Shown piece after piece: positions 1 to 39,100 of a DNA stretch of 64,000 nt (its first letter is position 1; each line of letters opens with the position of its first letter). The translations under genes and the position numbers were made by a program. This DNA is from Macrostomum lignano (Eukaryota): NCBI GenBank assembly GCA_002269645.1, contig NIVC01002591.1:58645-122644 (forward strand), given 5' to 3'. The notes below the pieces were generated by a model. The model saw only the letters and a list, made by a program, of their open reading frames with translations. It had not been told where the DNA came from and did not search any database.

Positions 1-409
1 AATTTTATTAAGTGGGCCTATTTAATTTACTAGGTCTAACCTAATATAGTAATGTATTGAATAAAATTCATAAAGCATACCCTATCAGGCTATTGTATGC
101 CTAGATATATTGTTACAAAATAGCATTATTCATAGAAAAGTCTTAAACTTTAATGCCCATATTCATATAACAATAGACCTAGCTTAATAAATTATATTCT
201 ATTTTAAATTATTTTTTATTTTTTTATTAAAAATCAATAAGAATGTCTAGCTGCAAAAATTCTAATAAAGCTATTTTAATTTTTCCTCAACTTGTTATTT
301 GTATTGATCAAAATTATATGGTTAAGTTGTATAAAAACATTAATATTGATCCATTTTCTTTTTTGTCATTTTACATTTTGAATGGATATTTCTTTTTCCT
401 AATTCACAG

Positions 410-2948
410 ATGCCAAGCGACTCATTGGGCGCAAGTTTGATGATTCTGTAGTCCAACAAGACATGAAGCATTGGCCTTTCACTGTCATCAATGATTCTGG
501 CAGGCCTAAGATTCAAGTTGAGTACAAAGGTGAAACTAAGACCTTCTTTGCTGAGGAGATTTCTTCCATGGTCTTGACAAAGATGAAGGAGACTGCAGAG
601 GCATACCTGGGAAAGACCGTCACTGATGCTGTTGTCACTGTGCCTGCCTACTTCAATGATAGTCAGCGTCAAGCCACCAAGGATGCTGGTGCCATTGCTG
701 GCCTGAATGTGCTGCGCATCATCAACGAGCCCACAGCTGCTGCCATTGCATATGGTCTAGACAAGAAGAGTGGCCACGAGAGGAATGTGCTCATCTTTGA
801 CCTCGGTGGTGGCACCTTCGATGTGTCCATCCTGACAATCGAAGAGGGCATCTTCGAGGTGAAGTCGACTGCTGGAGACACCCATCTGGGCGGTGAGGAC
901 TTTGACAACAGGATGGTGAACCATTTCATCCAGGAGTTCAAGCGCAAGTACAAGAAGGACATGAGTGACAACAAGCGCGCTGTGAGGCGTCTGCGCACTG
1001 CCTGCGAGAGGGCCAAGCGAACTCTGAGCAGCGCCGCCCAGGCCAACATCGAGATTGACAGCCTATACGAGGGTATTGACTTCTACACGAGCATCACCAG
1101 GGCTCGCTTCGAGGAGCTCAACGCCGACCTGTTCCGCGGCACCCTCGAGCCAGTCGAGAAGTCGCTGCGTGACGCCAAGCTCGACAAGGCGTCCATCAAC
1201 GAGATTGTGCTGGTGGGCGGCTCGACTCGAATCCCGAAGATCCAGAAGCTGCTGCAGGTGAGCAACTTGAAGTTTTTTAGATACTTCTTAGAAATTAAAG
1301 CTTGAGTAGTTAATTCAGCTGTTCTGCGAACTCAGATGATGATATTCTGTAAGGTATTCGCGGTTTCGACAGACGGACCTGCAGTGGGTTCTCTGATGCC
1401 CAAGACCTTCCTTAGTCTGATGCTGAGATTCGCACCTTCAGTAGGATTACTTATTTGCTTATTGTTAGTGTAGGCTAAAGCACTGGCCAGCCAGAGCTCT
1501 CTCAGATGATGATATTCTGTAAGGTATTCGCGGTTTCGACAGACGGACCTGCAGTGGGTTCTCTGATGCCCAAGACCTTCCTTAGTCTGATGCTGAGATT
1601 CGCACCTTCAGTAGGATTACTTATTTGCTTATTGTTAGTGTAGGCTAAAGCACTGGCCAGCCAGAGCTCTCTCAGATGATGATATTCTGTAAGGTATTCG
1701 CGGTTTCGACAGACGGACCTGCAGTGGGTTCTCTGATGCCCAAGACCTTCCTTAGTCTGATGCTGAGATTCGCACCTTCAGTAGGATTACTTATTTGCTT
1801 ATTGTTAGTGTAGGCTAAAGCACTGGCCAGCCAGAGCTCTCTCAGATGATGATATTCTGTAAGGTATTCGCGGTTTCGACAGACGGACCTGCAGTGGGTT
1901 CTCTGATGCCCAAGACCTTCCTTAGTCTGATGCTGAGGCTGGCCCAGTGGGGAGCTCGGAACAAAGCAAAGCAGTCCATCTGTAATCCCCATCGTCATCC
2001 CCACCCGCCATCTCGCAGGACTTCTTCAGCGGCAAGGAGCTCAACAAGTCAATCAACCCGGACGAGGCCGTCGCCTACGGCGCCGCCGTCCAGGCCGCCA
2101 TTCTGCACGGCGACAAGTCCGAGGCGGTGCAGGACCTCCTGCTGCTGGACGTGACGCCACTGTCGCTCGGCATCGAGACCGCTGGCGGCGTGATGACGGC
2201 CCTCATCAAGCGGAACACCACCATCCCCACCAAGCAGACGCAGACGTTCACCACCTACTCGGACAACCAGCCTGGCGTTCTAATCCAGGTGTACGAAGGC
2301 GAGCGCGCCATGACCAAGGACAACAACCTGCTGGGCAAGTTCGAGCTGTCCGGCATCCCGCCGGCTCCGCGCGGAGTCCCCCAGATCGAGGTGACCTTCG
2401 ACATCGACTCCAACGGCATTCTCAACGTGTCCGCCGTGGAGAAAAGCACCAACAAGGAGAACAAGATCACCATCACCAACGACAAGGGCCGTCTCAGCAA
2501 GGAGGACATCGAGCGGATGGTCAACGAGGCCGAGCGCTACAAGGCCGAGGACGACAAGCAGAAGGAGCGCGTCTCGGCCAAGAACTCGCTCGAGAGCTAC
2601 GCCTTCTCCATGCGCCAGACTGTCGAGGACGAGAAGCTCAAGGACAAGATCTCCGAGGACGACAAGAAGACCATCCTGGACAAGTGCAACGACGTCATCA
2701 AGTGGCTCGACGCCAACCAGACCGCCGAGAAGGACGAATACGACCATCAGCAGAAGGAGCTCGAGAAGGTGTGCAACCCCATCATCACCAAGCTGTACCA
2801 GGCCGCTGGCGGAGCCGGTGGAATGCCCGGTAGCATGCCTGGCGGCTTCCCCGGTGGCGCTCCTGGTGCTGGCGCTGCTGGCGGCCAGAGCGGCGGCGGC
2901 GGCGGCAGCGGTGGCGGCTCCGGCCCCACCATCGAGGAGGTCGACTAA
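410..2948 (+). CDS. hsp70: Cytosolic Hsp70/Hsc70, copy A (5'-partial). Exons 410-1257 and 2019-2948; the first exon lies upstream of the window
   Basis: Acceptor ...cacag|ATGCCAAGCGA at 409/410 (phase 1, [10 protein letters not shown]). Donor CTGCAG|gtgagc at 1257/1258, acceptor tctcgcag|GACTTC at 2018/2019, joining [25 protein letters not shown]. Hsp70 signatures [14 protein letters not shown] and [14 protein letters not shown]; GGMPG tail and GPTIEEVD C-terminus; TAA 2946-2948. Confidence 0.97.
1331..1427 (+). ncRNA. U14: U14-type box C/D snoRNA, unit A1 (intronic in Hsp70 A)
   Basis: Box C ATGATGA 1336-1342. Domain A TATTCGCGGTTTC 1355-1367 is antisense to the conserved 18S segment GAAACCGCGAAUG. 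Domain B CCTTCCTTAG 1406-1415 is antisense to 18S CUAAGGAAGG. Box D CTGA 1417-1420; terminal complementarity CTCAG/CTGAG. U14 is known to be hosted in hsc70 introns in vertebrates. Confidence 0.88.
1501..1597 (+). ncRNA. U14: U14-type box C/D snoRNA, unit A2
   Basis: Identical to A1, offset 170 bp. Confidence 0.85.
1671..1767 (+). ncRNA. U14: U14-type box C/D snoRNA, unit A3
   Basis: Identical to A1, offset 340 bp. Confidence 0.85.
1841..1937 (+). ncRNA. U14: U14-type box C/D snoRNA, unit A4 (nearest the 3' splice site)
   Basis: Identical to A1, offset 510 bp. Ends 81 nt upstream of the acceptor at 2018, the usual position for intronic C/D snoRNAs. Confidence 0.88.
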
Positions 2949-3803
2949 AAATAGTGTGAAATCTGACTGGAACATCAATTATCAGTGAAGAATTCTGTTT
3001 GTCAGCTTTGACCCTGGCTTGTACCTGGATTATAATACTTCCCCGAGCTGAAACATTCGCTACATGCGACTTGTCTAATTAATGATCATATGACGGTGTA
3101 CTTTTATTGCTGCTACTCCATCTCCTTGTTCGCCATCACATCCCAGTCTTGTTGATGTCAGAATTTTTGTTCTGAGGAGGATTAATAATTCAATAATAAA
3201 CAAGTTTTGTAATATTAATAACTAAAAATACCAATAATAATAATATAATCTGTTATTTTCGTCATCAAACGTAAGATTTCCTCCCACTATGTCATATAGT
3301 CTCACTTCTGTAGATTATTAAAACCGCTGTGTCATTTTTGGCTTCAGTAGTGAGATTTTTTGTCAGCCTTGTTTTTCTTTCAGCCCTTTTGACTAAAACA
3401 ATTGTTTTTTTGTCCGGGGTTGCATCGCCTTGACCTGCTCCAGTTTTCTACAAACAAATACTTAGCATACCGCATAAGTAAGCATTTCGTCTTCATTTTA
3501 AACCGAAAAAATATACAGTTTGGTTCATTTATTTCCAGGCGTTCTCGCGGCGCTAGGCCTATACTTTTCTAGGCCTTATATTCGGTTTTTCAATTATTCA
3601 GTTTCAAAAATGTCCGGTTTTGGATTATTTTTACTTGGTTAAAGAACGTCGACTGGTTCAGTATGTGGTTCAGTATTTATTACTGTATTACCGACTCTGC
3701 GGACTCATACATGCGCAACCTTGGGAATCACTCGGCCGTTTCTATTGGCAACACACACATGTAATTCGCTATTGGCTGAGAGCAGTCACGTGACTACCAC
3801 ATG

Positions 3804-4187
3804 ATTACCGCACACTTAAATCCTTTCCCATAAAAGATTGCCCAATACTAACATTTTCCATGGTATATTTCCAATTACTATTGAAAATACTACCAAATAG
3901 TGCTTCTGAAAATACTCCAATGGGAAATCCCCTGTGGCGGGAAATACTCAAATCGGGAATCTTCTGTGGGAAATACTGAAATCAGGAATTTCCTGCCTAG
4001 TGGGAAATACTGAAATCAGGAATTACCTGCCTAGTGGGAAATACTGAAATTGAGAATTTCCTGGTGGGAAATACGCAAATTGGGAATCTCCTGTGAGAGC
4101 TACTTATAAATTTGAAATAGGAAATATTAATCATTGACCTGGCAATCTTTTATGGGAAAAAGGATTTAAGTGTAGATGTACGGTAAT
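3804..4187. mobile_element. Foldback/MITE-like element with ~40-bp imperfect terminal inverted repeats and internal GGGAAATACT repeats
   Basis: attaccg-cacacttaaatcctttcccataaaagattgcc (3804-3842) is the reverse complement of ggcaatcttttatgggaaaaaggatttaagtgt...cggtaat (4141-4187). No TSD identified. Confidence 0.55.
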
Positions 4188-6087
4188 AAATGGGAAAATG
4201 GGCAATTTATTCCCATAAATTGGTCTGTCACTTGAAAAAACGTTTAAAAAAAGACAAGACCAATTTAACATGAAAAATCGATTAATGCGTCGTTATAGAG
4301 CAGCAGTGTGAGGCACAAAAATAGTGTGCAGTGTGATTAGAACTTTCCTTGACACTGTTAAGAGACCCAAACACTTTTAGTTTTGAAAATCGTGAAATTT
4401 CCTATCTCAGTATTGTTTTCCGGTGAAACCTGCCTTAAAAACTATTTCTGAACGAAAAGTTTTATGAATATTGATAGAGCAATAAGAAAGGCACAGCATA
4501 TCAAAAAGATGAACACTGGATCTGCCTCCTATCAAAAGCAATAATAATTTTTGTGCTGAAAAAATGAAAACCTCTTATCTCTGTTTACACGTGTATTTTT
4601 CGGCGAAAAGTTGCCTTCAAAACATTTACCATAGATTTCGAGTGTAGCGTCCTTCTACTTAAGTTGTCCTTGGTAATATTTAGTGTAGCTAGCAATCGAT
4701 TTCAGTTAAGCTTCCTAATTTTGTAAAGCTACATGGAAATCCATTTAATCCTGTCTGTCCTTTCTTACATGTACATTTTGCAACCATTGCACCGACTAAA
4801 TCAATGGTGCGTATGTCATTTACAAGTACATCTAACATCTACAGTGTACATTATATATACTTTATATGTACATGTATCTGCAGAAAGTTTACTTACAGAC
4901 CACGCAGACATGGACAGAGACAATTATAATGTATGCAAAGTACATGGACATGTACATGTATACGTCGCTTCTATATAATAGTGTTGCATTTAGCTTTCCG
5001 AAGTAGCGATTACATTGTACTTTTGACTCTTAATTATTGTTTGATCAGTATTCCTCGGCACAGGAGACCACTTGAACTATTTAAAATTACCGGTGTCTGC
5101 ATTTGGTACATGTACACAGATTTGTTTAGAAAGCTCCATATAGCATTTTTATTATGGAGACAAGCCATGGTTCTGAGACTCTGGGAAATATGCTTGACTT
5201 TTCATCAACTGCAGCTTTACACGTAGCTTGCTCGTATCAATAAAGTTAATAAACTACGAAAATAAAGCTGTCTTAATGGACCTGTAGACTGTAGTTGTAT
5301 GAATTAATGCATTAATGCGTAAGTTAGTATCGCATATTTACTATACGCGTATAAAGTACGAGCTGCAACCTAGGAAAATATCAATTACGGGCTCGGGCTG
5401 CATGTACATTTAGAGCCCGCGACGCAAAATCTCTACGAGTGTAAGACTTCTTTCCAAAATGATGGACTTTAAATGTACGTTTTTTATCAAACATACTGTG
5501 TAGTACAAATATTTCCAGGAAATACCGATGTCTTTAGTGAAGTCGTCGTTCGCAAGCAATTGTTTGTGGCTAAGCCGCTGTGAGTTAACTTAAGGACAGA
5601 AATATTTAACTTCCGCGCTAGGTTTCTCTGGTATTTTCATTTCATGACAACTACAAGTAAAAAAACAAATTAGTACATTGTAACTACCAAAATTAAGTGA
5701 TTTTCCAATAACCTGAGAAACTTGAGAAATAAAGGGTCCGGTAGTTTTTATAAAGATTAACATTTTTAACAAAAACCAAAAACTTAAATAAAATATTATT
5801 GGTATGTAATAAGTTGACTTTTAAGTTCGAACTGGATAATTTTGTATTTTAGTATTTAGCTTACAGGCCAGATGGAAGAGGCAGAGTAAAAAAACTGCTG
5901 TAAATTGGCATATTTAAAAAAACCAGACACCTGCAAAAGGTCGATCGCATCGATGAAATTCGATCTAACAGCCAGCATGGTACTGACGCTCGGGTACACG
6001 CAACCACTTTACTCTTACTTATAAGGTTTAGTTATTAAAAACGGACTGTCACAAAAGCCACCAAAGCAGCACTTTCGTTTAGAAACT

Positions 6088-9000
6088 TTAGTCGACCTCC
6101 TCGATGGTGGGGCCGGAGCCGCCACCGCTGCCGCCGCCGCCGCTCTGGCCGCCAGCAGCGCCAGCACCAGGAGCGCCACCGGGGAAGCCGCCAGGCATGC
6201 TACCGGGCATTCCACCGGCTCCGCCAGCGGCCTGGTACAGCTTGGTGATGATGGGGTTGCACACCTTCTCGAGCTCCTTCTGCTGATGGTCGTATTCGTC
6301 CTTCTCGGCGGTCTGGTTGGCGTCGAGCCACTTGATGACGTCGTTGCACTTGTCCAGGATGGTCTTCTTGTCGTCCTCGGAGATCTTGTCCTTGAGCTTC
6401 TCGTCCTCGACAGTCTGGCGCATGGAGAAGGCGTAGCTCTCGAGCGAGTTCTTGGCCGAGACGCGCTCCTTCTGCTTGTCGTCCTCGGCCTTGTAGCGCT
6501 CGGCCTCGTTGACCATCCGCTCGATGTCCTCCTTGCTGAGACGGCCCTTGTCGTTGGTGATGGTGATCTTGTTCTCCTTGTTGGTGCTTTTCTCCACGGC
6601 GGACACGTTGAGAATGCCGTTGGAGTCGATGTCGAAGGTCACCTCGATCTGGGGGACTCCGCGCGGAGCCGGCGGGATGCCGGACAGCTCGAACTTGCCC
6701 AGCAGGTTGTTGTCCTTGGTCATGGCGCGCTCGCCTTCGTACACCTGGATTAGAACGCCAGGCTGGTTGTCCGAGTAGGTGGTGAACGTCTGCGTCTGCT
6801 TGGTGGGGATGGTGGTGTTCCGCTTGATGAGGGCCGTCATCACGCCGCCAGCGGTCTCGATGCCGAGCGACAGTGGCGTCACGTCCAGCAGCAGGAGGTC
6901 CTGCACCGCCTCGGACTTGTCGCCGTGCAGAATGGCGGCCTGGACGGCGGCGCCGTAGGCGACGGCCTCGTCCGGGTTGATCGACTTGTTGAGCTCCTTG
7001 CCGCTGAAGAAGTCCTGCGAGATGGCGGGTGGGGATGACGATGGGGATTACAGATGGACTGCTTTGCTTTGTTCTGAGCTCCCCACTGGGCCAGCCTTCG
7101 CATCAGACTAAGGAAGGTCTTGGGCATCAGAGAACCCACTGCAGGTCCGTCTGTCGAAACCGCGAATACCTTACAGAATATCATCATCTGAGAGAGCTCT
7201 GGCTGGCCAGTGCTTTAGCCTACACTAACAATAAGCAAATAAGTAATCCTACTGAAGGTGCGAATCTCAGCATCAGACTAAGGAAGGTCTTGGGCATCAG
7301 AGAACCCACTGCAGGTCCGTCTGTCGAAACCGCGAATACCTTACAGAATATCATCATCTGTGAGAGCTCTGGCTGGCCAGTCATACATGCGCAACAGTCG
7401 GCCGAGTCGGCCGACTGATTTGGCAGCCAACCAAGGAAGTCGCAAAAAATGCCCACCCAAAAAATACCCACGCAGTAGTACTAAGTAGCTGACGAGGCAT
7501 TTTTGCCTGATAAGACAGTCATAGTTACTCCCGCCGTTTACCCAAAGTTGCGTTAATTTTGCTTTAGGGTTTTTTTTACATGTAAGTCGCATTTTTGGCC
7601 AAAAACTACGTCGCATTTTTGTTAAAACTAAGTCGCACGGCCGACCGAATTTTGGACGTTGCGCATGTATGTGGCCAGTGCTTTAGCCTACACTAACAAT
7701 AAGCAATAAGTAATCCTACTGCAGGTGCGAATCTCAGCATCAGACTAAGGAAGGTCTTGGGCATCAGAGAACCCACTGCAGGTCCGTCTGTCGAAACCGC
7801 GAATACCTTACAGAATATCATCATCTGAGTTCGCAGAACAGCTGAATTAACTACTCAAGCTTTAATTTCTAAGAAGTATCTAAAAAACTTCAAGTTGCTC
7901 ACCTGCAGCAGCTTCTGGATCTTCGGGATTCGAGTCGAGCCGCCCACCAGCACAATCTCGTTGATGGACGCCTTGTCGAGCTTGGCGTCACGCAGCGACT
8001 TCTCGACTGGCTCGAGGGTGCCGCGGAACAGGTCGGCGTTGAGCTCCTCGAAGCGAGCCCTGGTGATGCTCGTGTAGAAGTCAATACCCTCGTATAGGCT
8101 GTCAATCTCGATGTTGGCCTGGGCGGCGCTGCTCAGAGTTCGCTTGGCCCTCTCGCAGGCAGTGCGCAGACGCCTCACAGCGCGCTTGTTGTCACTCATG
8201 TCCTTCTTGTATTTGCGCTTGAACTCCTGGATGAAATGGTTCACCATCCTGTTGTCAAAGTCCTCACCGCCCAGATGGGTGTCTCCAGCAGTCGACTTCA
8301 CCTCGAAGATGCCCTCCTCGATTGTCAGGATGGACACATCGAAGGTGCCACCACCGAGGTCAAAGATGAGCACATTCCTCTCGTGGCCACTCTTCTTGTC
8401 TAGACCATATGCAATGGCAGCCGCTGTGGGCTCATTGATGATGCGCAGCACATTCAGGCCAGCAATGGCACCAGCATCCTTGGTGGCTTGACGCTGACTA
8501 TCATTGAAGTAGGCAGGCACAGTGACAACAGCATCAGTGACGGTCTTTCCCAGGTATGCCTCTGCAGTCTCCTTCATCTTTGTCAAGACCATGGAAGAGA
8601 TCTCTTCAGCAAAGAAGCTTTTAGTTTCACCTTTGAACTCAACTTGAATTTTTGGCCGACTGCCATCATTGACAACAGTGAAGGGCCAATGCTTCATGTC
8701 TTGTTGGACAACAGAATCATCAAACTTGCGTCCAATGAGTCGCTTTGCATCTGTAAGTGAATTAATTAATAGTAAAATATAAGCTTTGAAATTTGCAAAA
8801 CTAAAGCTAGGCTAGGCCTAATGACGGCAATTGTAAAGAATAGCTATGCCTCAGGATTTATAAGCAATATATAGGACATTTTAGACAGGTTTTAAAACTT
8901 TTGGGACTGTGGATTTATAATAAAATTACTTATTTCACTCGACTTAATTTAAGCCACAACTTAAACGACAGGTCAAAGCAGATATTCTTGGTCAATCGCC

Positions 9001-9292
9001 AAGTCATCGACTTATCGTAGGTACCTAATCTAATTAATGCATACTAAATTATCAAGTAAAAAAGATGACAGAAAGAATATGACTTACCAAACACAGTATT
9101 GGAAGGATTTAGCGCCACCTGATTTTTAGCCGAATCACCGATGAGCCTTTCGGTATCAGTAAATGCAACATAGCTGGGAGTTGTTCGGTTGCCCTGATCG
9201 TTGGCAATAATTTCAACCTTACCGTGCTGGAAGACACCAACACACGAGTAGGTTGTACCCAGATCAATACCAATTGCAGGAGTTTTAGACAT
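6088..9292 (-). CDS. hsp70: Cytosolic Hsp70/Hsc70, copy B (complete, 659 aa). Exons 9292-9088, 8750-7903, 7014-6088
   Basis: [21 protein letters not shown] start. GT-AG introns at 9087/8751 (phase 1, after 205 nt, the same position as the first coding intron of vertebrate HSPA8) and 7902/7015 (phase 0). Exon lengths 205+848+927 = 1980 nt; ends GPTIEEVD*. Confidence 0.97.
7096..7192 (-). ncRNA. U14: U14-type snoRNA, unit B3 (nearest the 3' splice site)
   Basis: Box C 7181-7187, box D 7103-7106. 3' flank variant TGCGAAG instead of TGCTGAG; 81 nt from the acceptor at 7015. Confidence 0.8.
7266..7362 (-). ncRNA. U14: U14-type snoRNA, unit B2
   Basis: Box C 7351-7357, box D 7273-7276. 5' stem variant CACAG instead of CTCAG. 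Confidence 0.8.
7382..7671. mobile_element. 290-bp hAT-like MITE inserted in a U14 spacer
   Basis: Perfect 14-bp TIRs CATACATGCGCAAC (7382-7395) / GTTGCGCATGTATG (7658-7671), with an 8-bp TSD TGGCCAGT at 7374-7381 and 7672-7679. The empty site is visible in the other spacers. An 8-bp TSD is typical of hAT. Confidence 0.9.
7733..7829 (-). ncRNA. U14: U14-type snoRNA, unit B1
   Basis: Reverse complement of the A-unit sequence: box C at 7818-7824, box D at 7740-7743. Confidence 0.85.
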
Positions 9293-9413
9293 ATTAAAGT
9301 TATTTGCTTAAGTTGTATTTATTAATATACTAATACAAACTAGATTTACAAATATAGCTAGCTTAGAGAACTTTCTGACGCCGTGTGTAAGGAAAAAGTG
9401 TTTGAATTGCCGC

Positions 9414-9444
9414 CTTTATAAAGGGGCGTAGAAAATTCTAGAAT
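9414..9444 (-). promoter_or_regulatory. Hsp70 B promoter: TATA box plus a perfect 3-unit heat-shock element
   Basis: aGAAaaTTCtaGAAt at 9430-9444 (nGAAnnTTCnnGAAn). TATAAAG on the minus strand at 9420-9414, ~120 nt upstream of the ATG. A further GAAnnTTC lies at ~9368-9375. Confidence 0.8.
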
Positions 9445-12400
9445 AAAATGACAAAATTACGATAACGATTGTCGTTATTTTACAAAGCCGGGCCCTTTTA
9501 CCTGTCTTCTTGTACTCACCCCTAAGAGAATATACGTGTAAAATAGGCGTAATGGCTCATTTAGTTTTATACTGCCAAGGGAAAGTGGAAACGTTAAAAT
9601 GATTTGACTTTTTTAATCTATGATATAGTTTGCGTTTAAATTGATTTATTCCCAGCAACATTGAAAAGTCTGTGGTCACCACTCGCCACTTTTGAGAGAA
9701 TACAGGTAAAGTCTGTCAAACCTTGCGAGTGACGCAACTCAGCTACGCCCCGCCCACGGCAGACTTGCTTGAGTTTTTGGGGAATGAAGTGGGTGGAGCG
9801 GTGTAAAAAGCTACATGTACCCCGAGATCAGTTTTCTCGTATTTTTTATTTCAGAGTAGTCCACAGAGAAGTGCTCTCACTGGCGCATAAAGTGGCGACT
9901 TAATTGCTGAGTATATGTTTATATGGAGCAAAGGTTATTTTTTACTAGCTAGTTGGTAATAATTACAATTTTTTGCAAAAAATTAGTAAACAATTACAAT
10001 ATTTGACTGGAAAACTATGAAATTAGAGCTTCGCATATCAGGATTTATTTATACTATAAATTTTGTACCCCGTGATGCTGAACTACTCTTAAATTTCGTA
10101 CAATTTATTATTAATTTTACAGAATTTTAAAGGCCCAGTACTGGCGCAACCTTACCCCTAGCTGCAACCTCAAATTCATTAAGGGGGGCAGACCCTATAT
10201 GGCTTGCTTATTTACATGCTTCCCAGAACGCACCCAGGCGTGGAGGGGTGCGTTCTTGCCACATTCGCCCACAACCTTCGGGCTTCAGCGGAGACCAGAA
10301 AAAATAAATAGGTGACCAAGCTCATGTTCGCCAAAATACTGTAAGATTACGATACACAGTTCTTTCGCTCGGAAATTTCTTTGGGGCAAGCGTGTACCCA
10401 TTGTGTAGAGTCCGGAATTAAGTTTTATAGACGTGCAAAGGTATAAGAATATGTTATTTTAAATGTTGTAATGGTTATTTGCAGCTTAGTTCTGTTAAAA
10501 TAAAATCTTTAATATTCTTAAACATACAATTGCAGTTTGCAGTCAACAATTATGTATCACTACGATTTTTTAAATGAAAAGGGCTGTGTTTTTTCGGAAA
10601 AATATTTTTAAGCATGCTGGCTTGATAATCCAAATTGCCTCGAACATGGTTACGTTACATGGGGTTCATGTTAACAGATAACTGCTTATTTGAGGTTTTA
10701 TTTACTTCGGTATTAAGCAAGTACAGGTCTGTCTGCACATAGTTTTTGCCTGCTTTTAGGGACAGTTCTCTTCATTTCGATATTTTTCGTAGAGATGTAG
10801 GGGCCTATTTTTATTTTGTATTTCGACAACGAATCAAAAATTTATGGACCGCTTTTTCTGGATATTGTCTATATATAGTTAACAGTGAGTAGGCATATGG
10901 CCTAGACATAGAGTTTCAACGAGCCCAGATTTTTGCTCAAGCCGAGCTCTAGTCGAGTAGCATGACCAAAAAACAAATCCGAGTAGGGCCTTAGTTGAGT
11001 TAAGGCAGGCATCGACATCGCCTGCCTTAGGCCTAGTTTTTGGTTATGGCTAATATTAGACTAGATAATAAATAAAATAATAAATTCCATTTTAGTATCT
11101 ATCTCTCTTAATTACTACCAATAGCAATAGGAAATGAGTGAAATATATAGACCTAGCCTAGCCTAGGCTTATTATCTATCTAGGCCCCAATTTGTGGTTT
11201 TGTGGTTGGGCATGTATGATATTGCTGCTCCAGTTTTACCAATCATCTTCAAATTTGACACAAACAATCTTATCTACTTTGACACATTTGTATAAAATTT
11301 TGAGTCTCAAAGTTGATATTGAAAGGTGTTGTGCACTTTTAAAGTTAGTCTGCTTTTTGTTAGCATAATAACCATCCCCACCTCTGCCTCTCTTCTTATC
11401 TGGCCAGATGTGTCCAAGGGATTTACAACTGACTAACTTTAGGCTGCCATAAGTTTGCTTTAGGCCTACATAAAGCAATTGATTTCAAAATTGACATAAT
11501 TCTTTATTGACTTATTCTTTGTCTAAATGTTAAGTCTCAACTCTGTAACTCAATCAGGATAGAAACTGTAAGCATTTAAAGTTTGTCTGCTTTTTCTATT
11601 GTTGTGTCACTTTTTTATTCCCTATAGATAGAGGAAAGGGTCAAGTTCGACTCAAGTAATAAGGATAAGTATATAAAGTAAATATAGAGTGTTTTGGAAT
11701 AAAATTTGTTTATAGCTTTCTTTGCACCATTGTGGAGAGGCTACATTTAGCTATTAGGCCCTACAGTTAAGTGAAAGATTTCTAACCACTATCTGATTGA
11801 GAGTACCTATTCTATCCTACAGTCTTTTCAAGCACTTGAGCTAATGCTATAGTTGATAAAACATGAGATGAAAGAGAACATAAGATATTTAAAGGGGGAA
11901 TGTAAAGAAAAGAAAATAGGCCTAAAGGAAAAGAAAGAAGAGATAAAAGATAAAATAGTAGAGAAGAAGCAAAGAAGAGGGGAAAGATAAGAGACTAGAG
12001 ATTAAAAAGAAGAGAGAAGAGAGGAAAGATAAAAAAGAGATAAGATGAGAAAGAAGAGAGCAGAGAACAGATAAGTTTTAAAGGACCTAAGGAATAGAGA
12101 GAAAGGCAGAGATCAGAGACTAGAGTTTGCCAGTGCATGCTTTAGACAAATGTTACCTGTCAATCCGTGGCAACCCTAATCAACAAGATCAATGCTTGCT
12201 TCAAATTTTAATCTAACACAAATTAATTCCAATTTTTTCAACTCTATCCCAACTATTAATAAACTTTTTTGAGTATGGCTTCAGATTTTAGATTGCATGC
12301 AAAAAGTTGCAGGGATTAGAATTTGGCAGGTTTAAAATCTACAGGTTTCAACAGCTTGTATAAAATAAAAATAAAGGTTTTCAACATTTATAACTCAAAA

Positions 12401-12627
12401 CTTGAAAAGAGGATATGCCAAATTAAAAATTAATATGTGCCAAAGTGGCATTTAACCTTCAAATAATTTGTGTCATTTGGGAAAAATGTGGCTAGGGCAC
12501 AAATTTGGCACAAAAAGCTCTAGTGATGTCAATCAATTTTAGTATACTAAGTTAATTTTATTGTATTTTTTTAGTACTTAACAATAATAAATTTCATGAA
12601 ATGTGTTATAAAATGCTTAACTGTTTT

Positions 12628-13244
12628 AATCCCTATAGGAAAAAGTTGTAAATCCGCGGACGGCGTCCGGCGCACTTTTGAAATTTTTCTAAAGCGCGGC
12701 GCGCGCACAGGCGCGCAGCGCCTGCGCGGCGTGCGCGCGCTGCCTTTTCTTGCTGGCTGCTGCTCTAGCAAATACATATGCATGGAAAGGGGTCATCTAA
12801 TACCTCTGTGGAAGGGGCCTATACACTTATAATTTATAAAGCTTAGAGATGTTCCGAAATTTCAATTTGAATTTTCCAAAATTAGAATTTTTATTAAGAG
12901 CAAATTTCAATTTCGAATAAAATTAGAAGTCAAAATTTGGAAGCTAAAATCGAAAAGTCAAAAATCGCTAAAAAAGCAGTAATTTCTGCTACATCTACGT
13001 GTATTTCATTTTGCATAAGCAGTAAATCGAATGTAAAAAGTGAGTATTGGTCATACTAAACTTTGTTTTTCTGCGTTTTGATTTCGGAAAATTTCAATTT
13101 TGAGTTTGGAAAGTTAACGAATTTTGATTTCGAGGAAACTGCTCTTTCGGGACATCTCTAATTATCCTAAAGCGCGGGAAAATAATTTGACTCTATTCTA
13201 AAGCGCGCGTCCGCGGGTTTTCAACATTTATTCCAATAGGGTTT
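12628..13244. mobile_element. Nested non-autonomous DNA-transposon-like elements (outer imperfect IR; inner 16-bp IR at 12844-13160)
   Basis: Outer: aatccctataggaaaaagttgtaaatccgcggacg vs cgtccgcgggttttcaacatttattccaatagggttt. Inner: tagagatgttccgaaa (12844-12859) vs tttcgggacatctcta (13145-13160), with degenerate 8-bp flanks ataaagct/attatcct. Confidence 0.5.
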
Positions 13245-13572
13245 TTAATTATAATTTTTAGTTTAATTTAAATATATTTTATTTTTAATAAAAATTTTCT
13301 GCATTTTAATTTTAAAACATGCTAGAACAATGAAAATTTGAAGTTGAACCTGTGCTTTTGGTAATGTTATGTTTTTTTATAAAAAAATGTTTCAAATTTT
13401 GTTAAATAAAACATGTTTAAAAGAGTAATAAACTGCTTTAAAAACTTACTTGCCTTTTTACAAATTAAAATTCATGGATAGCCACTAGTTTTGCTGCTTC
13501 TAGTCAGACCAAAATTAAGTACTACATAGACTGAGTGTCATTATTAATATCTCTATAAGTGAAACCTAAGAT

Positions 13573-16500
13573 ATGAATAACAATAGTACAAATGATGGTA
13601 CCTGTCAAGGAGCTGGTGGAGATCAAAGAAGCAATATGGCTGGTGTGTTCAGCTTTGATCCATCAGATATTGAGGTAATAAATTGTAATAAAGATGTCAT
13701 TTTATATTTGTAAACTTGCTCATAATTGTATTTATTTGTTTGTATCATTTTTTCACCTGAATATCAAGGAAATTCTGAGGCTTAATGATGAAGCTCATTT
13801 GGGGAATTCTGAGGTTTGATGACCAAATCTCATTAGGGGAATTCTGAGGTTTGATGACCAAATCTCATTAGGGGAATTCTGAGGTTTGATGACCAAATCT
13901 CATTAGGGGAATTCTGAGGTTTGATGACCAAATCTCATTAGGGGAATTCTGAGGCTTGATGACCGAATCTCATTAAGGGAATTCTGATGTTTGATGACCA
14001 AATCTCATTAGGGGAATTCTGAGGCTTGATAATGGAATCTCATTAGGGGAATTCTAAGGCTTGATAATGGAATCTCATTAGGGGAATTCTGATGCTTGAT
14101 AACAGAATCTCATTAGAGGAATTCTGGTGTTTAATGACCGAATCTCATTAGGGAATTCTGAGGCTTGATAACCAAATCTCATTAGGGAATTCTAAGGCTT
14201 GATAACTGAATCTCATTAGGGGAATTCTGAGGTTTGATGACCAAATCTCATTAGGGGAATTCTGAGGCTTGATGACCGAATCTCATTAAGGGAATTCTGA
14301 TGTTTGATGACCAAATCTCATTAGGGGAATTCTGAGGCTTGATAATGGAATCTCATTAGGGGAATTCTAAGGCTTGATAATGGAATCTCATTAGGGGAAT
14401 TCTGATGCTTGATAACGGAATCTCATTAGAGGAATTCTGGTGTTTAATGACCGAATCTCATTAGGGAATTCTGAGGCTTGATAACCAAATCTCATTAGGG
14501 AATTCTAAGGCTTGATAACTGAATCTCATTAGGGGAATTCTGAGGTTTGATGACCAAATCTCATTAGGGGAATTCTGAGGCTTGATGACCGAATCTCATT
14601 AAGGGAATTCTGATGTTTGATGACCAAATCTCATTAGGGGAATTCTGAGGCTTGATAATGGAATCTCATTAGGGGAATTCTAAGGCTTGATAATGGAATC
14701 TCATTAGGGGAATTCTGATGCTTGATAACGGAATCTCATTAGAGGAATTCTGGTGTTTAATGACCGAATCTCATTAGGGAATTCTGAGGCTTGATAACCA
14801 AATCTCATTAGGGAATTCTAAGGCTTGATAACTGAATCTCATTAAGGGAATTCTGAGGCTTGATGACCGAATCTCATTAAGGGAATTCTGAGGCTTGATG
14901 ACCGAATCTCATTAGGGAATTCTAAGGCTTGATAACCAAATCTCATTAGGGAATTCTGAGGCTTGATAACTGAATCTCATTAGGGAATTCTGAGGCTTGA
15001 TAACCGAATCTCATTAGGCTAATTCTAAGGGTTTATGACTAAAGCTCTTTAATAGAATTATATAAGGGCTAATGACCTTGACTTACTTTGACTTAGCTGC
15101 ATGGTGGTCTATAGACACAGCAGGCAGGTAAGGGTCACCCATTTCGCTAGCCTTGAAGGCCCGCAGACAGGCAGAGGCGTGGGGCCAGTCAGGGTGGTCC
15201 GCCGGTCCATCCTTCAGCGTGATCTTCCATTGGGAAGAAACTGGCTCGTCTAGTTGCCCGAAGGAACAGGATGAGCCGTGAGATGCTGTTGGGCTGGCAG
15301 ACCTCGTCAATGGACAGGTTTAGCCCAAGTTAGCATAGCCGGTCTCTGGTAAAGAAAAGACAGTGACAAACAAAGTGCTGAGCATCTTCATTGTCGTACT
15401 TGCAAAAAGGGCAAAGTTCGCTCTTGAGGTCACCTCTGAGGAAGCAGTGCCTGGCAAGGTAGCCGTGGCCGGTAAGGGTCATGACAAGGGCTTGAATATC
15501 CTTCCGATTTTGGTTCAGAAGAACGTTTCTGAGCCTGCAAGACGGGTAAGGAACAGCACGAGATTGCCGGCAGTTTTGGGTGCCCGCCCATCTGTCCCTG
15601 TGGAAGGAGTCAGCCCAGTTGTCGATCTGACGATTGATGACTGTCGAGGGCATAGGGACCAGGGAGGCAGGGCCAAAGAAAGAGCCAGAGCTGCCCCTCT
15701 TGTCGAGGGTGTCTGCCAGCTCGTTCCCCGGAAACCCTGCGTGCCCTGGGATCCACTTCAGCCTGGCGGCGACTGTCCGGGAGTTCGTTGTGGTGTGGCA
15801 AAGGGCCTGTAAGGCCGCTTGGCTGTCAGAGTGGATGACAATAGTCTCTCTTTTCTTACCCTTGGCGTTCAGCTCTGCAGCGCAGGAGCTGATGGCAAGG
15901 ACTTCGTTCTGGAAGACCGTGGAGAGTCTGCCAGTGTGCTGGGCATGCGTGGAAATGACACGGCCGTTGATGATGATGCAAACCCCAAAGCCGACGCGAC
16001 AATCTTTGATGGATTCTTGGCTTCTTGGCTTTTGCTTGAACGTGGGGTGACCAGTTCAGCGTGTGGTCCAGGGTAATACCCAGACATTTAGTGTGCTTGC
16101 AGAAGGGGATTTCCCTTCCGTAAAGCGTGAGCGGCCGAATCTGCCACTTGGTCCTGCTGGTGAACATGATCGCTGCGGTCTTAGTCTCAGAGAGCCTTAA
16201 ACCACAGCGGTCCGCCCATTGCTCAGCGGCGTAGATGAAGTTCTGAAGAAGGTCCCTGAGGGTATCAGGGGACGGACCAGATGCCACCGCGGTGACATCG
16301 TCCGCATATCCTACTTTCAGAATGGGGTCAGGCCGAGCATCCCGGAGGAGCTCATCGATGACCATGTTCCATAGAACTGGAGACAGCACCCCACCTTGCG
16401 GGCTACCTTTGCAGACGGGGACCGCCCTCTGGTGGCCCAGCAGATTGGCGGTGGCCGTGCGATGGCTGATCATGTACATGATCCATCTGGTGAGATGTGA

Positions 16501-19500
16501 GTGCGTTTACCTCTCACAAAGAGCTCTTCGGAACGCCTCGAAGAGGACGTTATCGAAGGCGCCAATGATGTCCAAGAAGATCCCCAGAGCAAAGCCGTTA
16601 CCAAGCACGGCCTTCTCAAGTTTATCGACCAGGACGTGCAGCGCGCTTTCAGTGGAGCGACCCACCCGAAAAGCGTGCTGGTTCTCACTGAGAGGTTTGT
16701 TCTTCAGCTCAACAGAGAGAAGGCACCAAAGCACCAGTCTCTCTATCAGCTTGACCAGGGAGGAGGTCAGGCTGATCGGTCTGAAGGATTTGATAGATTG
16801 GTAGTCCGGGCGGCCTGGCTTAGGGATAAAAATCACCTTTGCCTCGATCCATGCCTGTGGGACATAACCAAGCGTGATTCACACCCCAAGAAGGCTGCAA
16901 AGTTTACACAGGAAGCCTGGGCATTTAACCGCCTCTCTTAGGAGAGCCGGTACAATGCCGTCGGGTCCTGGGGCTTTGAAAGGTTTGAAGGAATTAGCCG
17001 CTCTCACGATGCGGTCCTCCGTGATGATAGAGGCAGCCAGCGCGTGACCTCCCTCCGAGTGATCCGGAGTGGTCGTGTTAGCTGGCTCGTTGGGGAAAAA
17101 CGCAGTGAGCATTACAGCAAGCGTTTCCCCTGGGTTGTCCGTGGACTTACCGTCGGTGTGTTTGACCGAGGAGAGCTTAGACATTTTGTCCAGCGTAAGC
17201 GCTTTAACAATTCTGGAGGTGAGGCGTGAGCCCTCTAGCTCCTTACAGTATTGTCGCCATTTTTGAGCCTTTGCATTCCTAACCTGCCTTTTAAACTCAT
17301 GGATTGCTTCATGGTAGGCGGTTTGGTCCGCTGGGCTCTTAGTTTTAGTAGCTCTGCGGTGGAGTCTCTTAGCTCTGCGACGGAGGTTGCCGAGCTCGGG
17401 ATTCTACCACGGTGCGGATTTTTCCCTTTATAGGCTTTTAAAGGGCAGGACGCCTCAAAAGCGGCGGTTAGCGCACTCATCCGCTTCTTGGCATGACGTG
17501 ATCGTGGATATTTGGCCAGGAGACCGATGGAATTCCTTCAGAGCGAGCCCGAAGGTTTCCCAATCAGTATTTCTGGCGTTCCGTCTCCACGTAACACGAG
17601 TTGCGCTACGCGCGGCCATCAGGTTGAAGGAGATGAACTTGTGATCAGAGAGTGAGGACACTGGAAGCACCCGCCACGCCCCAATACTTTGGTAGAGTCT
17701 GAGCGTAGCGTCGATCACCTCCGACCACCGTCCGTTGTCAAAGGTGGCGGTGGACCCAGAGTTGCAGAACTCGAGGGTCGTAGAGGCAACGTAGGCTAGG
17801 AGGTCTTCGCCTCTCTGATTAATGCCAGTGAGTATGGTGGGTGTTGATGTCGCCGGCAACCAAGAGCTCGTAGTTTTTACCAGAGCAGAGCTCTACCAGC
17901 GTAGCGAGGGCTCTGAGGACGACCGCAACATCGCCTGGTAGGTAAACCGAGGCAATGAGTGTGGTCTTCCCAGGAAGGAGGTCCTCGGATTGGATGACGC
18001 AAATGTCCCTGTTGGACAGGTCCGATCTGAGCCACGCACTGAGCGTTTTGGTCGCAAAGATGCAAGCTCTGGGAGGCTGGTTGGCCTCGCGAGGGTAACT
18101 ATAAAAACAATTGTAGCCGTCAGGGGCGTTTGTGTGAGATAGTGTGAGAATTTGTATCGGTTTATTATAAGTAGTATTTAACACAAAAATGTATTACTTA
18201 TTTACAAACTGCTTTCGTGCACATTAAACAGGCAAGTAGCGCCAATCCTGGCAACGCGGCAAACGGATCGGTTGTGTCTGACGCCGCCGCCGCTCCAGAC
18301 GCCAGCGATGAGGCGGCCGCCGCCGCCGCCTATCCGCCTTTGACTCCGCGCCTGCTATGCGAACCGGAAAGTCCGCCAGACACGGAAGAGAACGTCAGCA
18401 CCCAGGCTGACGGCATATTTCGTTCGTTTGTATTTGAAAGATTCGCCCGCGACAGGGAGATTGGCCAATTGGATCCGGGCACTCCGGACTCGCCCGAGCT
18501 GGCCAGGGAGCGGCCGCCGCCACTGTCTCAAGAGGCTCGAATTGGTCGCCAACTGGCCGAGATTGGCGACGATATTCAGCAGAGATATAGCAGCCAGTTC
18601 AAGGATATGATTAAATCCTTGGAGAGTCAGTTGACCGATTCTGAGGCGTCGTTTGAGGTGAGGATTTTAACAGGGAAATCCTCTTCTTAATATAAAAAAA
18701 TCGCCCCTAACTTCAGGGAAAATCGCCCCTTACTTACAAGGGAAAATCGCGCCTTATTAGGGAAAATCGCCCCTATCAGGGAAAATCGCCCAAAATTGAA
18801 GAGAAAATCGCCCCTAACTTAAGGGAAAATCGCCCCTTATTAGGAAAAATCGCCCCTTATCAGGGAAAATCGCCCATAATGGAAGAGAAAATCGCCTCTA
18901 ACCTAAGGGAAAATCGCCCCTAACCTAAGGGAAAATCGCCCTTTATTAGGGGAAATCGCCCCTAATTGAAGAGAAAATCGCCCCTAATTTAAGGGAAAAT
19001 CGCCCCTTATTAGGGGGAATCGCCCCTAAGTGAAGAGAAAGTCGCCCCTTATTAGGGAAAATCGCCCCTAATTAAAGAAAAAATCGCCCCTAACTTTGGG
19101 GAAAATCGCCCCTTATTAGGGAAAATCGCCCCTATCAGGGAAAATCGCCCAAAATTGAAGAGAAAATCGCCCCTAACTTAAGGGAAAATCGCCCCTTATT
19201 AGGGAAAATCGCCCCTTATCAGGGAAAATCGCCCATAATGGAAGAGAAAATCGCCTCTAACCTAAGGGAAAATCGCCCCTAACCTAAGGGAAAATCGCCC
19301 TTTATTAGGGGAAATCGCCCCTAATTGAAGAGAAAATCGCCCCTAATTTAAGGGAAAATCGCCCCTTATTAGGGGGAATCGCCCCTAAGTGAAGAGAAAG
19401 TCGCCCCTTATTAGGGAAAATCGCCCCTAATTAAAGAAAAAATCGCCCCTAACTTTGGGGAAAATCGCCCCTTATTAGGGAAAATCGCCCCTAATTGAAG

Positions 19501-36153: not shown

Positions 36154-39100
36154 TGTCAGTTTGGCTACCAATATTACCATCTAGTGTCAGTTTGGCTACC
36201 AATTTTACCCTCTAGTGTCAGTTTGGCTACCAATTTTAGCCTCTAGTGTCAGTTTGGCTACCAATTTTACCCTCTAGTGTCAGTTTGGCTACCAATATTA
36301 CCATCTAGTGTCAGTTTGGCTACCAATTTTAGCCTCTAGTGTCAGTTTGGCTACCAATATTACCATCTAGTGTCAGTTTGGCTACCAATTTTAGCCTCTA
36401 GTGTCAGTTTGGCTACCAATTTTACCCTCTAGTGTCAGTTTGGCTACCAATTTTACCCTCTAGTGTCAGTTTGGCTACTAATTTTACCCTCTAGTGTCAG
36501 TTTGGCTACCATTTTACCCTCTAGTGTCAGTTTGGCTACCTATTTTACCCTCTAGTGTCAGTTTGGCTACCTATTTTACCCTCTAGTGTCAGTTTGGCTA
36601 CCAATTTTACCCTCTAGTGTCAGTTTGGCTACCAATTTTACCCTCTAGTGTCAGTTTGGCTACCAATTTTACCATCTAGTGTCAGTTTGGCTACCAATTT
36701 TACCCTCTAGTGTCAGTTTGGCTACCAATTTTACCCTCTAGTGTCAGTTTGGCTACCAATTTTACCCTCTAGTGTCAGTTTGGCTACCAATTTTACCCTC
36801 TAGTGTCAGTTTGGCTACCAACTTTAGCCTCTAAGTGTCAGTTTGGCTACCATTTTACCCTCTAGTGTCAGTTTGGCTACCTATTTTACCCTCTAGTGTC
36901 AGTTTGGCTACCAATTTTACCCTCTAGTGTCAGTTTGGCTACCAATTTTACCCTCTAGTGTCAGTTTGGCTACCAATTTTACCATCTAGTGTCAGTTTGG
37001 CTACCAATTTTACCCTCTAGTGTCAGTTTGGCTACCAATTTTACCCTCTAGTGTCAGTTTGGCTACCAATTTTACCCTCTAGTGTCAGTTTGGCTACCAA
37101 TTTTACCCTCTAGTGTCAGTTTGGCTACCAATTTTACCCTCTAGTGTCAGTTTGGCTACCAACTTTAGCCTCTAAGTGTCAGTTTGGCTACCATTTTACC
37201 CTCTAGTGTCAGTTTGGCTACCTATTTTACCCTCTAGTGTCAGTTTGGCTACCAATTTTACCCTCTAGTGTCAGTTTGGCTACCAATTTTACCCTCCAGT
37301 GTCAGTTTGGCTACCAATTTTACCCTCTAGTGTCAGTTTGGCTACCAATTTTACCCTCCAGTGTCAGTTTGGCTACCAATTTTACCCTCTAGTGTCAGTT
37401 TGGCTACCAATTTTACCCTCTAGTGTCAGTTTGGCTACCAATTTTACCCTCTAGTGTCAGTTTGGCTACCAATTTTACCCTCTAGTGTCAGTTTGGCTAC
37501 CAATTTTAACCTCTAGTGTCAGTTTGGCTACCAATTTTACCCTCTAGTGTCAGTTTGGCTACCAATTTTACCCTCTAGTGTCAGTTTGGCTACCAATTTT
37601 ACCCTCTAGTGTCAGTTTGGCTACCAATTTTACCCTCTAGTGTCAGTTTGGCTACCAATTTTACCCTCTCGTGTCAGTTTGGCTACCAATTTTACCCTCT
37701 AGTGTCAGTTTGGCTACCAATTTTACCCTCTAGTGTCAGTTTGGCTACTAATTTTACCCTCTATTGTCAACTTGACTACCAATTTTACCCTCTAGTGTCG
37801 ACTTGACTACCAATTTTACCCTCTCGTGTCAGTTTGGCTACCAATTTTACCCTCTAGTGTCAGTTTGGCTACCAATTTTACCCTCTAGTATCAACTTGAC
37901 TACCAATTTTACCAAACAGTGTCAGTTTGGCTACCAATTTTACCCTCTAGTGTCAGTTTGGCTACCAATTTTACCCTCTAGTGTCAGTTTGGCTACCAAT
38001 TTTACCCTCCAGTGTCAGTTTGGCTACTAATTTTACCCTCTATTGTCAACTTGACTACCAATTTTACCCTCTAGTGTCGACTTGACTACCAATTTTACCC
38101 TCTCGTGTCAGTTTGGCTACCAATTTTACCCTCTAGTGTCAGTTTGGCTACCAATTTTACCCTCTAGTGTCAGTTTGGCTACCAATTTTACCCTCTAGTG
38201 TCAGTTTGGCTTCCAATTTTACCCTCAAGTGTCAGTTTGGCTACCAATTTTACCCTCTAGTGTCAGTTTGGCTACCAATTTTACCCTCTAGTGTCAGTTT
38301 GGCTACCAATTTTACCCTCTAGTGTCAGTTTGGCTACCAATTTTACCCTCCAGTGTCAGTTTGGCTACTAATTTTACCCTCTAGTGTCAGTTTGGCTACC
38401 AATTTTACCCTCCAGTGTCAGTTTGGCTACCAATTTTACCCTCTAGTGTCAGTTTGGCTACCAATTTTACCCTCCAGTGTCAGTTTGGCTACTAATTTTA
38501 CCCTCTATTGTCAACTTGACTACCAATTTTACCCTCTAGTGTCGACTTGACTACCAATTTTACCCTCTCGTGTCAGTTTGGCTACCAATTTTACCCTCTA
38601 GTGTCAGTTTGGCTACCAATTTTACCCTCTAGTATCAACTTGACTACCAATTTTACCAAACAGTGTCAGTTTGGCTACCAATTTTACCATCTAGTGTCAG
38701 TTTGGCTACCAATTTTACCCTCTAGTGTCAGTTTGGCTACCAATTTTACCCTCTAGTGTCAGTTTGGCTACCAATTTTACCCTCTAGTGTCGGTTTGGCT
38801 ACCAATTTTACCCTCAAGTGTCAGTTTGGCTACCAATTTTACCCTCTAGTGTCGGTTTGGCTACCAATTTTACCCTCTGGTGTCAGTTTGGCTACCAATT
38901 TTACCCTCTAGTGTCAGTTTGGCTACCAATTTTACCCTCTAGTGTCAGTTTGGCTACCAATTTTTCCCTCCAGTGTCAGTTCGGCTACCAATTTTTCCCT
39001 CCAGTGTCAGTTCGGCTACCAGTTTTGCCCTCCCGTGTCAGTTCGGCTACCAATTTTGCCCTCCCGTGTCAGTTTGGCTACCAATTTTTCCCTCTAGTGT

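Follow-up and report, generated by a model that had tools for sequence, protein, structure and literature searches.

U14 in the introns of hsc70 is the founding example of an intronic small nucleolar RNA (snoRNA), with three copies in human, mouse and rat (PMC7277114). In this study, we analyzed a 64,000-nucleotide (nt) stretch of the flatworm Macrostomum lignano (assembly GCA_002269645.1, contig NIVC01002591.1, positions 58,645 to 122,644 of the forward strand, referred to here as "the window"), in which four U14 units stand head to tail within a single hsc70 intron. Intronic clusters with more than one snoRNA gene per intron, often isoforms from local duplication, occur in Drosophila and rice; going by their titles, papers by Huang et al. 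of 2004 and 2005 reportedly describe such clusters in Drosophila, which are said to be mainly of the H/ACA type and usually to have hosts other than those of U14. Plant U14 clusters and the yeast snR190-U14 dicistron are multi-snoRNA precursors that are separated endonucleolytically, and the known snoRNA-capped long noncoding RNAs (sno-lncRNAs) have kilobase-scale sequence between their two snoRNAs. In chicken, a pair of identical snoRNA loci is found in each of two introns (PMC2770669), two snoRNA genes in one intron are the stated prerequisite of mammalian sno-lncRNAs (PMC4234469), and RNase III-dependent snoRNA processing has been discussed for yeast (PMC7277114, PMC12508059). A limited literature search gave no paper on Macrostomum snoRNAs or on mollusc or flatworm U14, which is not proof of novelty.

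An initial annotation, made from the sequence alone, had placed four U14 units at 1331-1937 in an Hsp70 intron, with 73 nt from the donor to the first unit and 81 nt from the end of the last one to the 3' splice site. The units and their host were borne out by Tandem Repeats Finder, a repeat search and the exon translations, and both distances were confirmed on the sequence. The features of this first gene are as follows.

410-1257, plus strand: exon of hsc70 gene 1, translation (D)AKRLIGR...KIQKLLQ; in the 5' direction the gene extends beyond the window edge
1258-2018, plus strand: host intron of hsc70 gene 1, 761 nt, GT..AG, between Q351 and D352, from the sequence and the exon translations
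2019-2948, plus strand: last exon of hsc70 gene 1, its translation ending in GPTIEEVD, with the stop codon at 2946-2948
1331-1427, plus strand: U14 unit 1, with box C at 1336-1342, domain A at 1356-1368, domain B at 1406-1415 and box D at 1417-1420
1331-1335 and 1423-1427, plus strand: the two halves of the terminal stem of U14 unit 1, from the sequence
1501-1597, plus strand: U14 unit 2, identical to unit 1
1671-1767, plus strand: U14 unit 3, identical to unit 1
1841-1937, plus strand: U14 unit 4, identical to unit 1, 81 nt upstream of the 3' splice site
1428-1500, 1598-1670 and 1768-1840, plus strand: 73-nt spacers between the U14 units of gene 1

Over 1331-1937, Tandem Repeats Finder reports a period of 170 with 3.6 copies, 100% matches and no indels, and the repeat search returns three 267-nt copies at a spacing of 170 nt, all of them 100% identical; the array resolves into four identical 97-nt units and three identical 73-nt spacers. 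The host is a gene of the constitutive heat-shock-cognate 70 (hsc70) type: the best match of the gene 1 exon protein is the M. lignano Hsp70 BOX15_Mlig022022g1 (99% identity over 100% of the query), and the next matches, at 85-90%, are hsc70/Hsc70-4 proteins from molluscs, insects and vertebrates. Positions 1-14000 of the window agree with contig NIVC01002591.1 at 100% identity.

Each unit has the anatomy of a box C/D snoRNA gene of the U14 type. A 5-bp terminal stem, CUCAG (unit positions 1-5) with CUGAG (93-97), is present in every unit and forms in both the minimum-free-energy and the centroid folds. Every unit likewise has box C (AUGAUGA) at positions 6-12 and box D (CUGA) at 87-90, the latter being separated from the stem by a 2-nt offset, UG. 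Domain A, AUUCGCGGUUUCG, occupies positions 26-38, starting 13 nt after box C, and is followed by a short stem; a D'/C'-like CUGAUG lies at 63-68, and a shortened domain B, CCUUCCUUAG, at 76-85, one U before box D. The 12-mer ATTCGCRGTTTC occurs seven times in the window against 0.02 occurrences expected by chance. A putative branch site, cugUAAu, was read by eye at 1980-1986, about 48 nt past the end of unit 4. The spacer was also inspected by eye for a mini-exon or for recursive splicing, and this idea was rejected, as the polypyrimidine-AG stretch UUAUUGUUAG is good, but no adjacent donor spares the snoRNA.

Those seven occurrences are found in two genes. Three units, additional to the four of the initial annotation, lie on the minus strand in the homologous intron of a second, complete hsc70 gene.

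6088-9292, minus strand: hsc70 gene 2, complete and convergent with gene 1, with exons at 9292-9088, 8750-7903 and 7014-6088
7902-7015, minus strand: U14-bearing intron of hsc70 gene 2, 888 nt, homologous to the host intron of gene 1
7829-7733, minus strand: U14 unit 1 of gene 2, identical to the reference unit
7362-7266, minus strand: U14 unit 2 of gene 2, with variant U2A, which breaks one pair of the terminal stem
7192-7096, minus strand: U14 unit 3 of gene 2, with variant CU93-94GA in the 3' half of the terminal stem
7382-7671, minus strand: 290-bp non-autonomous transposon in the first spacer of the gene 2 array, with 14-bp terminal inverted repeats, CATACATGCGCAAC
7679-7672 and 7381-7374, minus strand: 8-bp target-site duplication, ACTGGCCA, flanking the 290-bp transposon

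Target-site duplications of 8 bp are typical of hAT elements, and further copies of the terminal repeat of this transposon lie nearby, at 3706-3719 and 11205-11218. The Rfam search found no additional snoRNA in intron 1 of gene 2.

The convergent hsc70 pair is present three times in the assembly, in the window and on NIVC01000065.1 and NIVC01000064.1, with flanks that are about 96% identical, and the exons of the two genes of one pair are 97-99% identical. A recent genome duplication is reported for M. lignano, and three copies of a pair with near-identical exons are consistent with such a duplication plus gene conversion. The six homologous introns carry four units (window, plus strand), three (window, minus strand), three and three (NIVC01000065.1), and two and two (NIVC01000064.1), so that two units is the smallest state seen and none of the introns has a single one. 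In each of the three 3-unit arrays, the middle unit has U2A; A6G (which still gives RUGAUGA), C44A and CU93-94GA occur in one unit each, and there are three spacer variants in addition. As several introns on three contigs have private variants, the stacking of U14 is not an assembly artefact, and the multi-copy state in the hsc70 introns of M. lignano is real and variable. The number of exactly four in gene 1 is a narrower matter. It is very unlikely that these four identical units are a product of assembly or polishing and that the real array is shorter or longer, even though the 3-unit arrays vary internally and this one is 100% identical over its 607 bp: the assembly is presumably based on long reads, which would span a 607-bp array trivially, and five other introns, on this contig and two more, hold 2-3 units with distinct variants and a transposon. 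The initial annotation had itself raised the possibility of an artefact, and these five further introns speak for the multi-copy state.

The family assignment rests on two covariance models. With Rfam at a permissive threshold, SNORD14 (RF00016) was the top family for all seven units of the window, with full-length model matches and alignments that cover box C, domain A, domain B and box D in each unit. The second model, R2, was built from 10 U14s in mollusc hsc70 introns of three species (the mussel Sinanodonta woodiana with five and the snail Littorina saxatilis with two, all above the Rfam gathering threshold, and the clam Mercenaria mercenaria with three, at 39-58 bits). It was searched against both strands of 131 kb, made up of the window, the two paralogous Macrostomum loci and the hsc70 loci of six other animals. 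R2 recovered exactly the 17 Macrostomum units (17/17), at 27.5-33.8 bits and E values of 1e-5 to 5e-4 that are rough because the calibration was shortened (29.5 bits and 1.4e-4 for unit 1), and it gave no other match at E<=10 on either strand of this search space. Motif order and spacing agree along the full length of both models, both of which align domain A to the consensus AUUCGCAGUUUCC, and the A-to-G variant of domain A in Macrostomum, AUUCGCgGUUUC, is also present in the Littorina U14s above gathering. Since R2 matches all 17 units and Littorina has the same domain A variant, we accept the units as U14 with two caveats, the missed gathering threshold and a shifted register of domain B. 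The claim of the initial annotation that these are U14-like box C/D snoRNA genes, several to an hsc70 intron, is upheld by the permissive Rfam matches, R2 and the paralogues together.

Several results weigh against the assignment and the account built on it. At gathering thresholds, Rfam gave no match in the whole window, and the permissive SNORD14 scores (19.7-24.2 bits) miss the gathering value of 64, as do those of the clam U14s. A first model, R1, made from the three Mercenaria U14s alone, returned only AT-rich noise and missed the units, with filters off too, and it was replaced by the 10-sequence, three-species R2. The unit, the spacer and the whole intron were also folded, with z-scores between 0.06 and 0.31; these are no better than shuffles and uninformative, as expected for C/D snoRNAs. 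Finally, Rfam and R2 agree on a deletion of 3 nt in the stretch from domain B to box D. The cmsearch comparison with SNORD14 that the initial annotation had called for did return that family on top, but below gathering; it had also named the lack of a significant covariance-model match as a ground for rejection, and here the outcome is divided between the sub-gathering Rfam scores and the R2 E values given above.

Could the units belong to a different C/D snoRNA, or be dead relics that resemble the antisense boxes of U14 by chance? The low SNORD14 score and the non-canonical spacing of domain B point that way, but a model derived from molluscs matches all 17 units and nothing else, and the order and spacing of the motifs follow both models. 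Moreover, the host is the classical host of U14 (PMC7277114) and hosts U14 in three molluscs too, and we regard either possibility as extremely improbable.

The consequences of the deletion concern only one of the two antisense elements. Canonical domain B is CCUUCCUUGGAUGU, directly upstream of box D, with the target 18S C at the fifth position. Owing to the 3-nt deletion, this C would not lie at the fifth position upstream of box D in Macrostomum, and by the box D+5 rule the guide would point to an A three nt downstream of it; domain B may no longer be a methylation guide. The statement of the initial annotation that each unit has both diagnostic antisense elements holds only in part where the methylation guide is concerned, the register of domain B being 3 nt off. 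The essential pairing of U14 runs through domain A, which is intact in the Macrostomum units. A review places the essential function of U14 in base-pairing with pre-18S rRNA (PMC7277114).

The 18S sites concerned, for domains A and B, would be ...GAAAC(C/U)GCGAAU... and ...AUC(C/U)AAGGAAGG..., respectively. At least 120 anonymous environmental 18S contigs carry GAAACCGCGAAU (GAAACCGCGAAUGGCUCAUUAAAUCAG), and among the 86 of them in which the domain B site is readable, 18 have CUAAGGAAGG (ACAUCUAAGGAAGG) and 68 have CCAAGGAAGG (ACAUCCAAGGAAGG). The predicted pair of 18S motifs thus exists in nature, as 18 environmental 18S sequences have both; the exact 30-mer complement including GUC was absent from the metagenomes searched. 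With the common GAAACUGCGAAU as its partner, domain A would still stay paired through a G-U wobble.

The edges of the arrays bear on their origin. All six share their outer flanks, ...GUUCUGCGAA on the 5' side and GCUGGCCCAG... on the 3' side, with edges exactly at unit boundaries, and the spacer is similar to neither of the two. Before unit 1, UGCGAA (1325-1330) pairs with UUCGCA at the start of the spacer (1429-1434); the 20 nt before the first unit and the spacer start give a pairing free energy (dG) of -12.3 kcal/mol (p 0.014 against shuffles). At the other end, CACUGGCCAGC of the last spacer (1821-1831) pairs with GCUGGCCCAGUG (1938-1949), as GCUGGCC-C-AGUG, and the spacer end and the 20 nt after the last unit give dG -20.3 (p 0.026, shuffles). 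No pairing was found between the flanks of inner units (dG -5.2, p 0.70, shuffles). If a segment with one U14 had been duplicated, the spacer would be the junction of both flanks; it is not, so that simple duplication is unsupported. The initial annotation had supposed that an intron of about 250 nt with one U14 was tandemly amplified, and this does not agree with six introns of 2, 2, 3, 3, 3 and 4 units that all end at unit boundaries. Complementary outer flanks and chimeric inner ones are, on the other hand, as expected from unequal exchange between two U14 copies. We propose an ancestral intron with two U14 copies, in which the complementary flanks of either copy formed an external stem; unequal crossing-over or replication slippage between the copies would then have produced arrays of 2-4 repeats of one unit plus a 73-nt spacer.

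The repeat-prone genome context fits an origin by unequal exchange, minisatellite arrays making up about 45% of the 64-kb window (our own estimate from the Tandem Repeats Finder table). The region 13771-63060 is very rich in minisatellites, with many arrays, of which three are:

50048-56583: minisatellite with a 22-bp unit, 298 copies
36154-39279: minisatellite with a 31-bp unit, 101 copies
39761-42789: minisatellite with a 32-bp unit, an array of about 3 kb

Strong strand-composition skews were seen at 32-40 kb and 50-56 kb. Nearer to the arrays, a 34-bp tandem repeat, GTGGGAAATACTGAAATCAGGAATTTCCTGCCTA, with about five copies (3935-4093), lies in the 3.1-kb spacer between the convergent 3' ends of the two hsc70 genes. 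An annotated gene of the Bcl-2 family (291 aa, PF00452) lies beside the hsc70 pair, at about 13573-17292 of the window, and its span includes a 35-bp minisatellite (13771-15039).

The conservation of the arrays is less telling. Between contigs, the units are 99.2% and the inner spacers 98.6% identical, compared with 86% and 92% for the outer intron flanks. Because the spacers share the high identity, it can be put down to concerted evolution no less than to selection, and the near-equal conservation of units and spacers could reflect the former instead of the latter. Domain A, domain B, the core of box C and box D are all free of variant positions, and this sparing of the motifs by about five variant events is not significant (roughly p 0.1, our own estimate). 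These two points, together with the fact that the sole other retrieved copy of the four-unit locus, with its 100% identity, comes from the same assembly record, also count on the negative side; the last of them equally favors the artefact considered above.

How the units would be expressed, processed and used is suggested by this anatomy and by what is known of human intronic C/D snoRNAs. The latter precede the branch point by about 50 nt, and their assembly is coupled to splicing; long external stems permit splicing-independent assembly; and the debranched intron is trimmed by exonucleases, the ends being shielded by the core proteins (PMC5519232). In the Macrostomum intron, after splicing and debranching, core C/D proteins would load on the C/D kink-turn motif of each copy. 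Splicing-coupled assembly would take place on the 3'-most copy, whose distance from the branch point is canonical, and assembly of the first copy would be aided by the external stem; inner units lack an external stem and have only their own 5-bp terminal stem. Exonucleases would trim the ends of the intron, but with two or more small nucleolar ribonucleoproteins (snoRNPs) per intron they would by themselves leave a linked RNA, so that monomers need a cut in the spacer. An endonucleolytic cut in the spacers, followed by trimming, would yield monomers of about 90-97 nt, and the yield of U14 per hsc70 transcript would scale with copy number. Domain A would then pair with the 5' region of 18S rRNA in an essential chaperone role, the guide register of domain B being 3 nt out of place. 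Taken jointly, U14 genes that look functional in an hsc70 intron, an origin by unequal exchange, assembly on each copy and release of monomers form the account that we favor, and we hold it to be somewhat probable as a whole.

The copies may, however, not all be equal. It is possible, although on balance doubtful, that only the end copies are productive, and that inner copies are neutral by-products of crossing-over that are poorly assembled or degraded and barely affect the dose. The flank pairing described above, found for the first and last units and not for inner ones, would agree with this, as would the variants U2A in middle units and CU93-94GA in the last unit of gene 2, which hint at relaxed constraint, and the abundance of minisatellites in the window, which makes tandem expansion a background process. 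Inner units nevertheless retain boxes C and D, the 5-bp stem and both antisense elements, and all units are identical in the 4-unit array of the window.

The nature of the product is the second point at which the account could fail. If the spacers remained uncut, linked multi-U14 RNAs of 267, 437 or 607 nt would result, capped by a snoRNP at both ends. The gene arrangement required of sno-lncRNAs, at least two snoRNA genes per intron (PMC4234469), is found in all six introns (6/6), each with 2-4 units. In addition, folding against shuffles revealed no significantly stable hairpin in the 73-nt spacer that could mark an RNase III site, and the spacers are as conserved as the units. Yet the intronic or polycistronic snoRNA clusters of Drosophila and plants give monomers, the essential role of U14 requires a free snoRNP that pairs with pre-18S, and an array that varies between two and four units and has taken up a 290-bp transposon in a spacer speaks against a defined functional long RNA. 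We therefore consider linked RNAs unlikely. Because the task of U14 calls for a free snoRNP, and because the spacers tolerate a transposon and changes in copy number, monomeric U14 is, in our analysis, the most likely product.

The hsc70 loci of other animals place the arrangement in a wider context. In Sinanodonta woodiana (CM100999.1), ten SNORD14 matches (39.8-75.3 bits, five of them above gathering) all lie in one annotated intron, at aa 373/374 (locus positions 3467-11350). Two tRNA-like matches (7695-7767 and 10944-11016) stand among them and may be short interspersed elements. The hsc71 gene of Mercenaria mercenaria (CM038768.1) has SNORD14-like sequences at 5898-5987, 6763-6854 and 11111-11199, all in one 5.5-kb intron (5791-11279) at about aa 508; between the end of the last of these and the acceptor lie 81 nt, just as in Macrostomum. 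Littorina saxatilis hsc71 has two U14s above gathering, one in the intron at about aa 189 and the other in that at aa 373. Matches in the Littorina locus lie at 729-811, 2226-2320 and 4380-4474; besides the two U14s, they include a weak SNORD53/92-like C/D candidate (32.8 bits, E 0.004) in the intron after aa 68. U14 is on the sense strand of the hsc70 intron in Macrostomum and in all three molluscs. No U14 was found in the examined hsc70 loci of Haliotis, Helobdella, Schistosoma margrebowiei, Pollicipes and Schistocerca, or in an hsc70-like gene of Xenopus tropicalis that was meant as a vertebrate positive control and is evidently not the U14-hosting paralogue.

The position of the host intron differs between lineages. 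In Macrostomum it lies at Q351|D352, and the gene has no intron at aa 373, the site of U14-bearing introns in Littorina and Sinanodonta. No intron is present at 351 in the molluscs and the Xenopus paralogue, in which aa 373, 442, 508 and 585 are intron sites; the same holds for vertebrate hsc70, whose aa-373 intron hosts U14. The intron after aa 68 (phase 1) is common to Macrostomum and all hsc70 genes compared. The position at 351 could be due to intron relocation or to a separate capture of U14.

Ten U14s in one mussel intron and three in one clam intron mean that several U14s per hsc70 intron are not peculiar to the flatworm, and they, together with the chicken introns mentioned at the outset (PMC2770669), contradict the rarity that the initial annotation had ascribed to animal introns with several snoRNAs. 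The U14/hsc70 pairing, first described in mammals, now extends to a flatworm and three molluscs, which argues that it is at least as old as the bilaterian common ancestor, and several U14s per hsc70 intron recur in the Lophotrochozoa. A bolder reading takes the hsc70 introns of Lophotrochozoa as an exception to the arrangement of one C/D snoRNA per intron, with the conserved Macrostomum spacers cut by a new animal endonuclease activity, or else with stably concatenated U14 RNPs that have a function of their own. Differences in copy number between hsc70 homeologues would then tune U14 dose, and with it the output of 18S, relative to the expression of the chaperone; we see this as distinctly unlikely. 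M. lignano is a model in which transgenesis is possible, and its array, with 2-4 units of 170 bp that vary naturally, could be a convenient system for the processing of introns with several C/D snoRNAs. Questions that could be addressed there include: whether release is endonucleolytic; how assembly depends on position and on an external stem; and whether sno-lncRNAs are formed.

Compared with U14 in vertebrate hsc70/HSPA8, the Macrostomum units have the same box C, domains A and B, box D, stem, host and sense-strand orientation, but domain B is 3 nt nearer to box D and the Rfam score is below gathering. Several U14s per gene are common to both; in vertebrates, however, there is one in each of three introns, whereas in Macrostomum two to four near-identical copies stand head to tail in one. 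Sinanodonta and Mercenaria share several U14s in one hsc70 intron with Macrostomum, but theirs are dispersed over introns of 5-8 kb with irregular spacing and have diverged (39-75 bits), while those of Macrostomum form a compact and regular 170-bp tandem repeat of near-identical units, in introns of less than 0.9 kb, the copy number differing among paralogues. The intronic clusters of Drosophila and rice resemble it in having more than one snoRNA gene per host intron. The sno-lncRNAs of the Prader-Willi region and RPL13A share the multi-snoRNA intron as well, but the Macrostomum arrays have spacers of 73 nt and up to four stacked snoRNAs. The U14 precursors of plants and yeast are independently transcribed and non-intronic, or are intronic clusters of differing snoRNAs, whereas the precursor in Macrostomum would be the spliced intron of a protein-coding gene in which all cistrons are the same snoRNA. 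The array is thus the already known pairing of U14 with hsc70 in an intronic multi-copy form, and not a new class of element.

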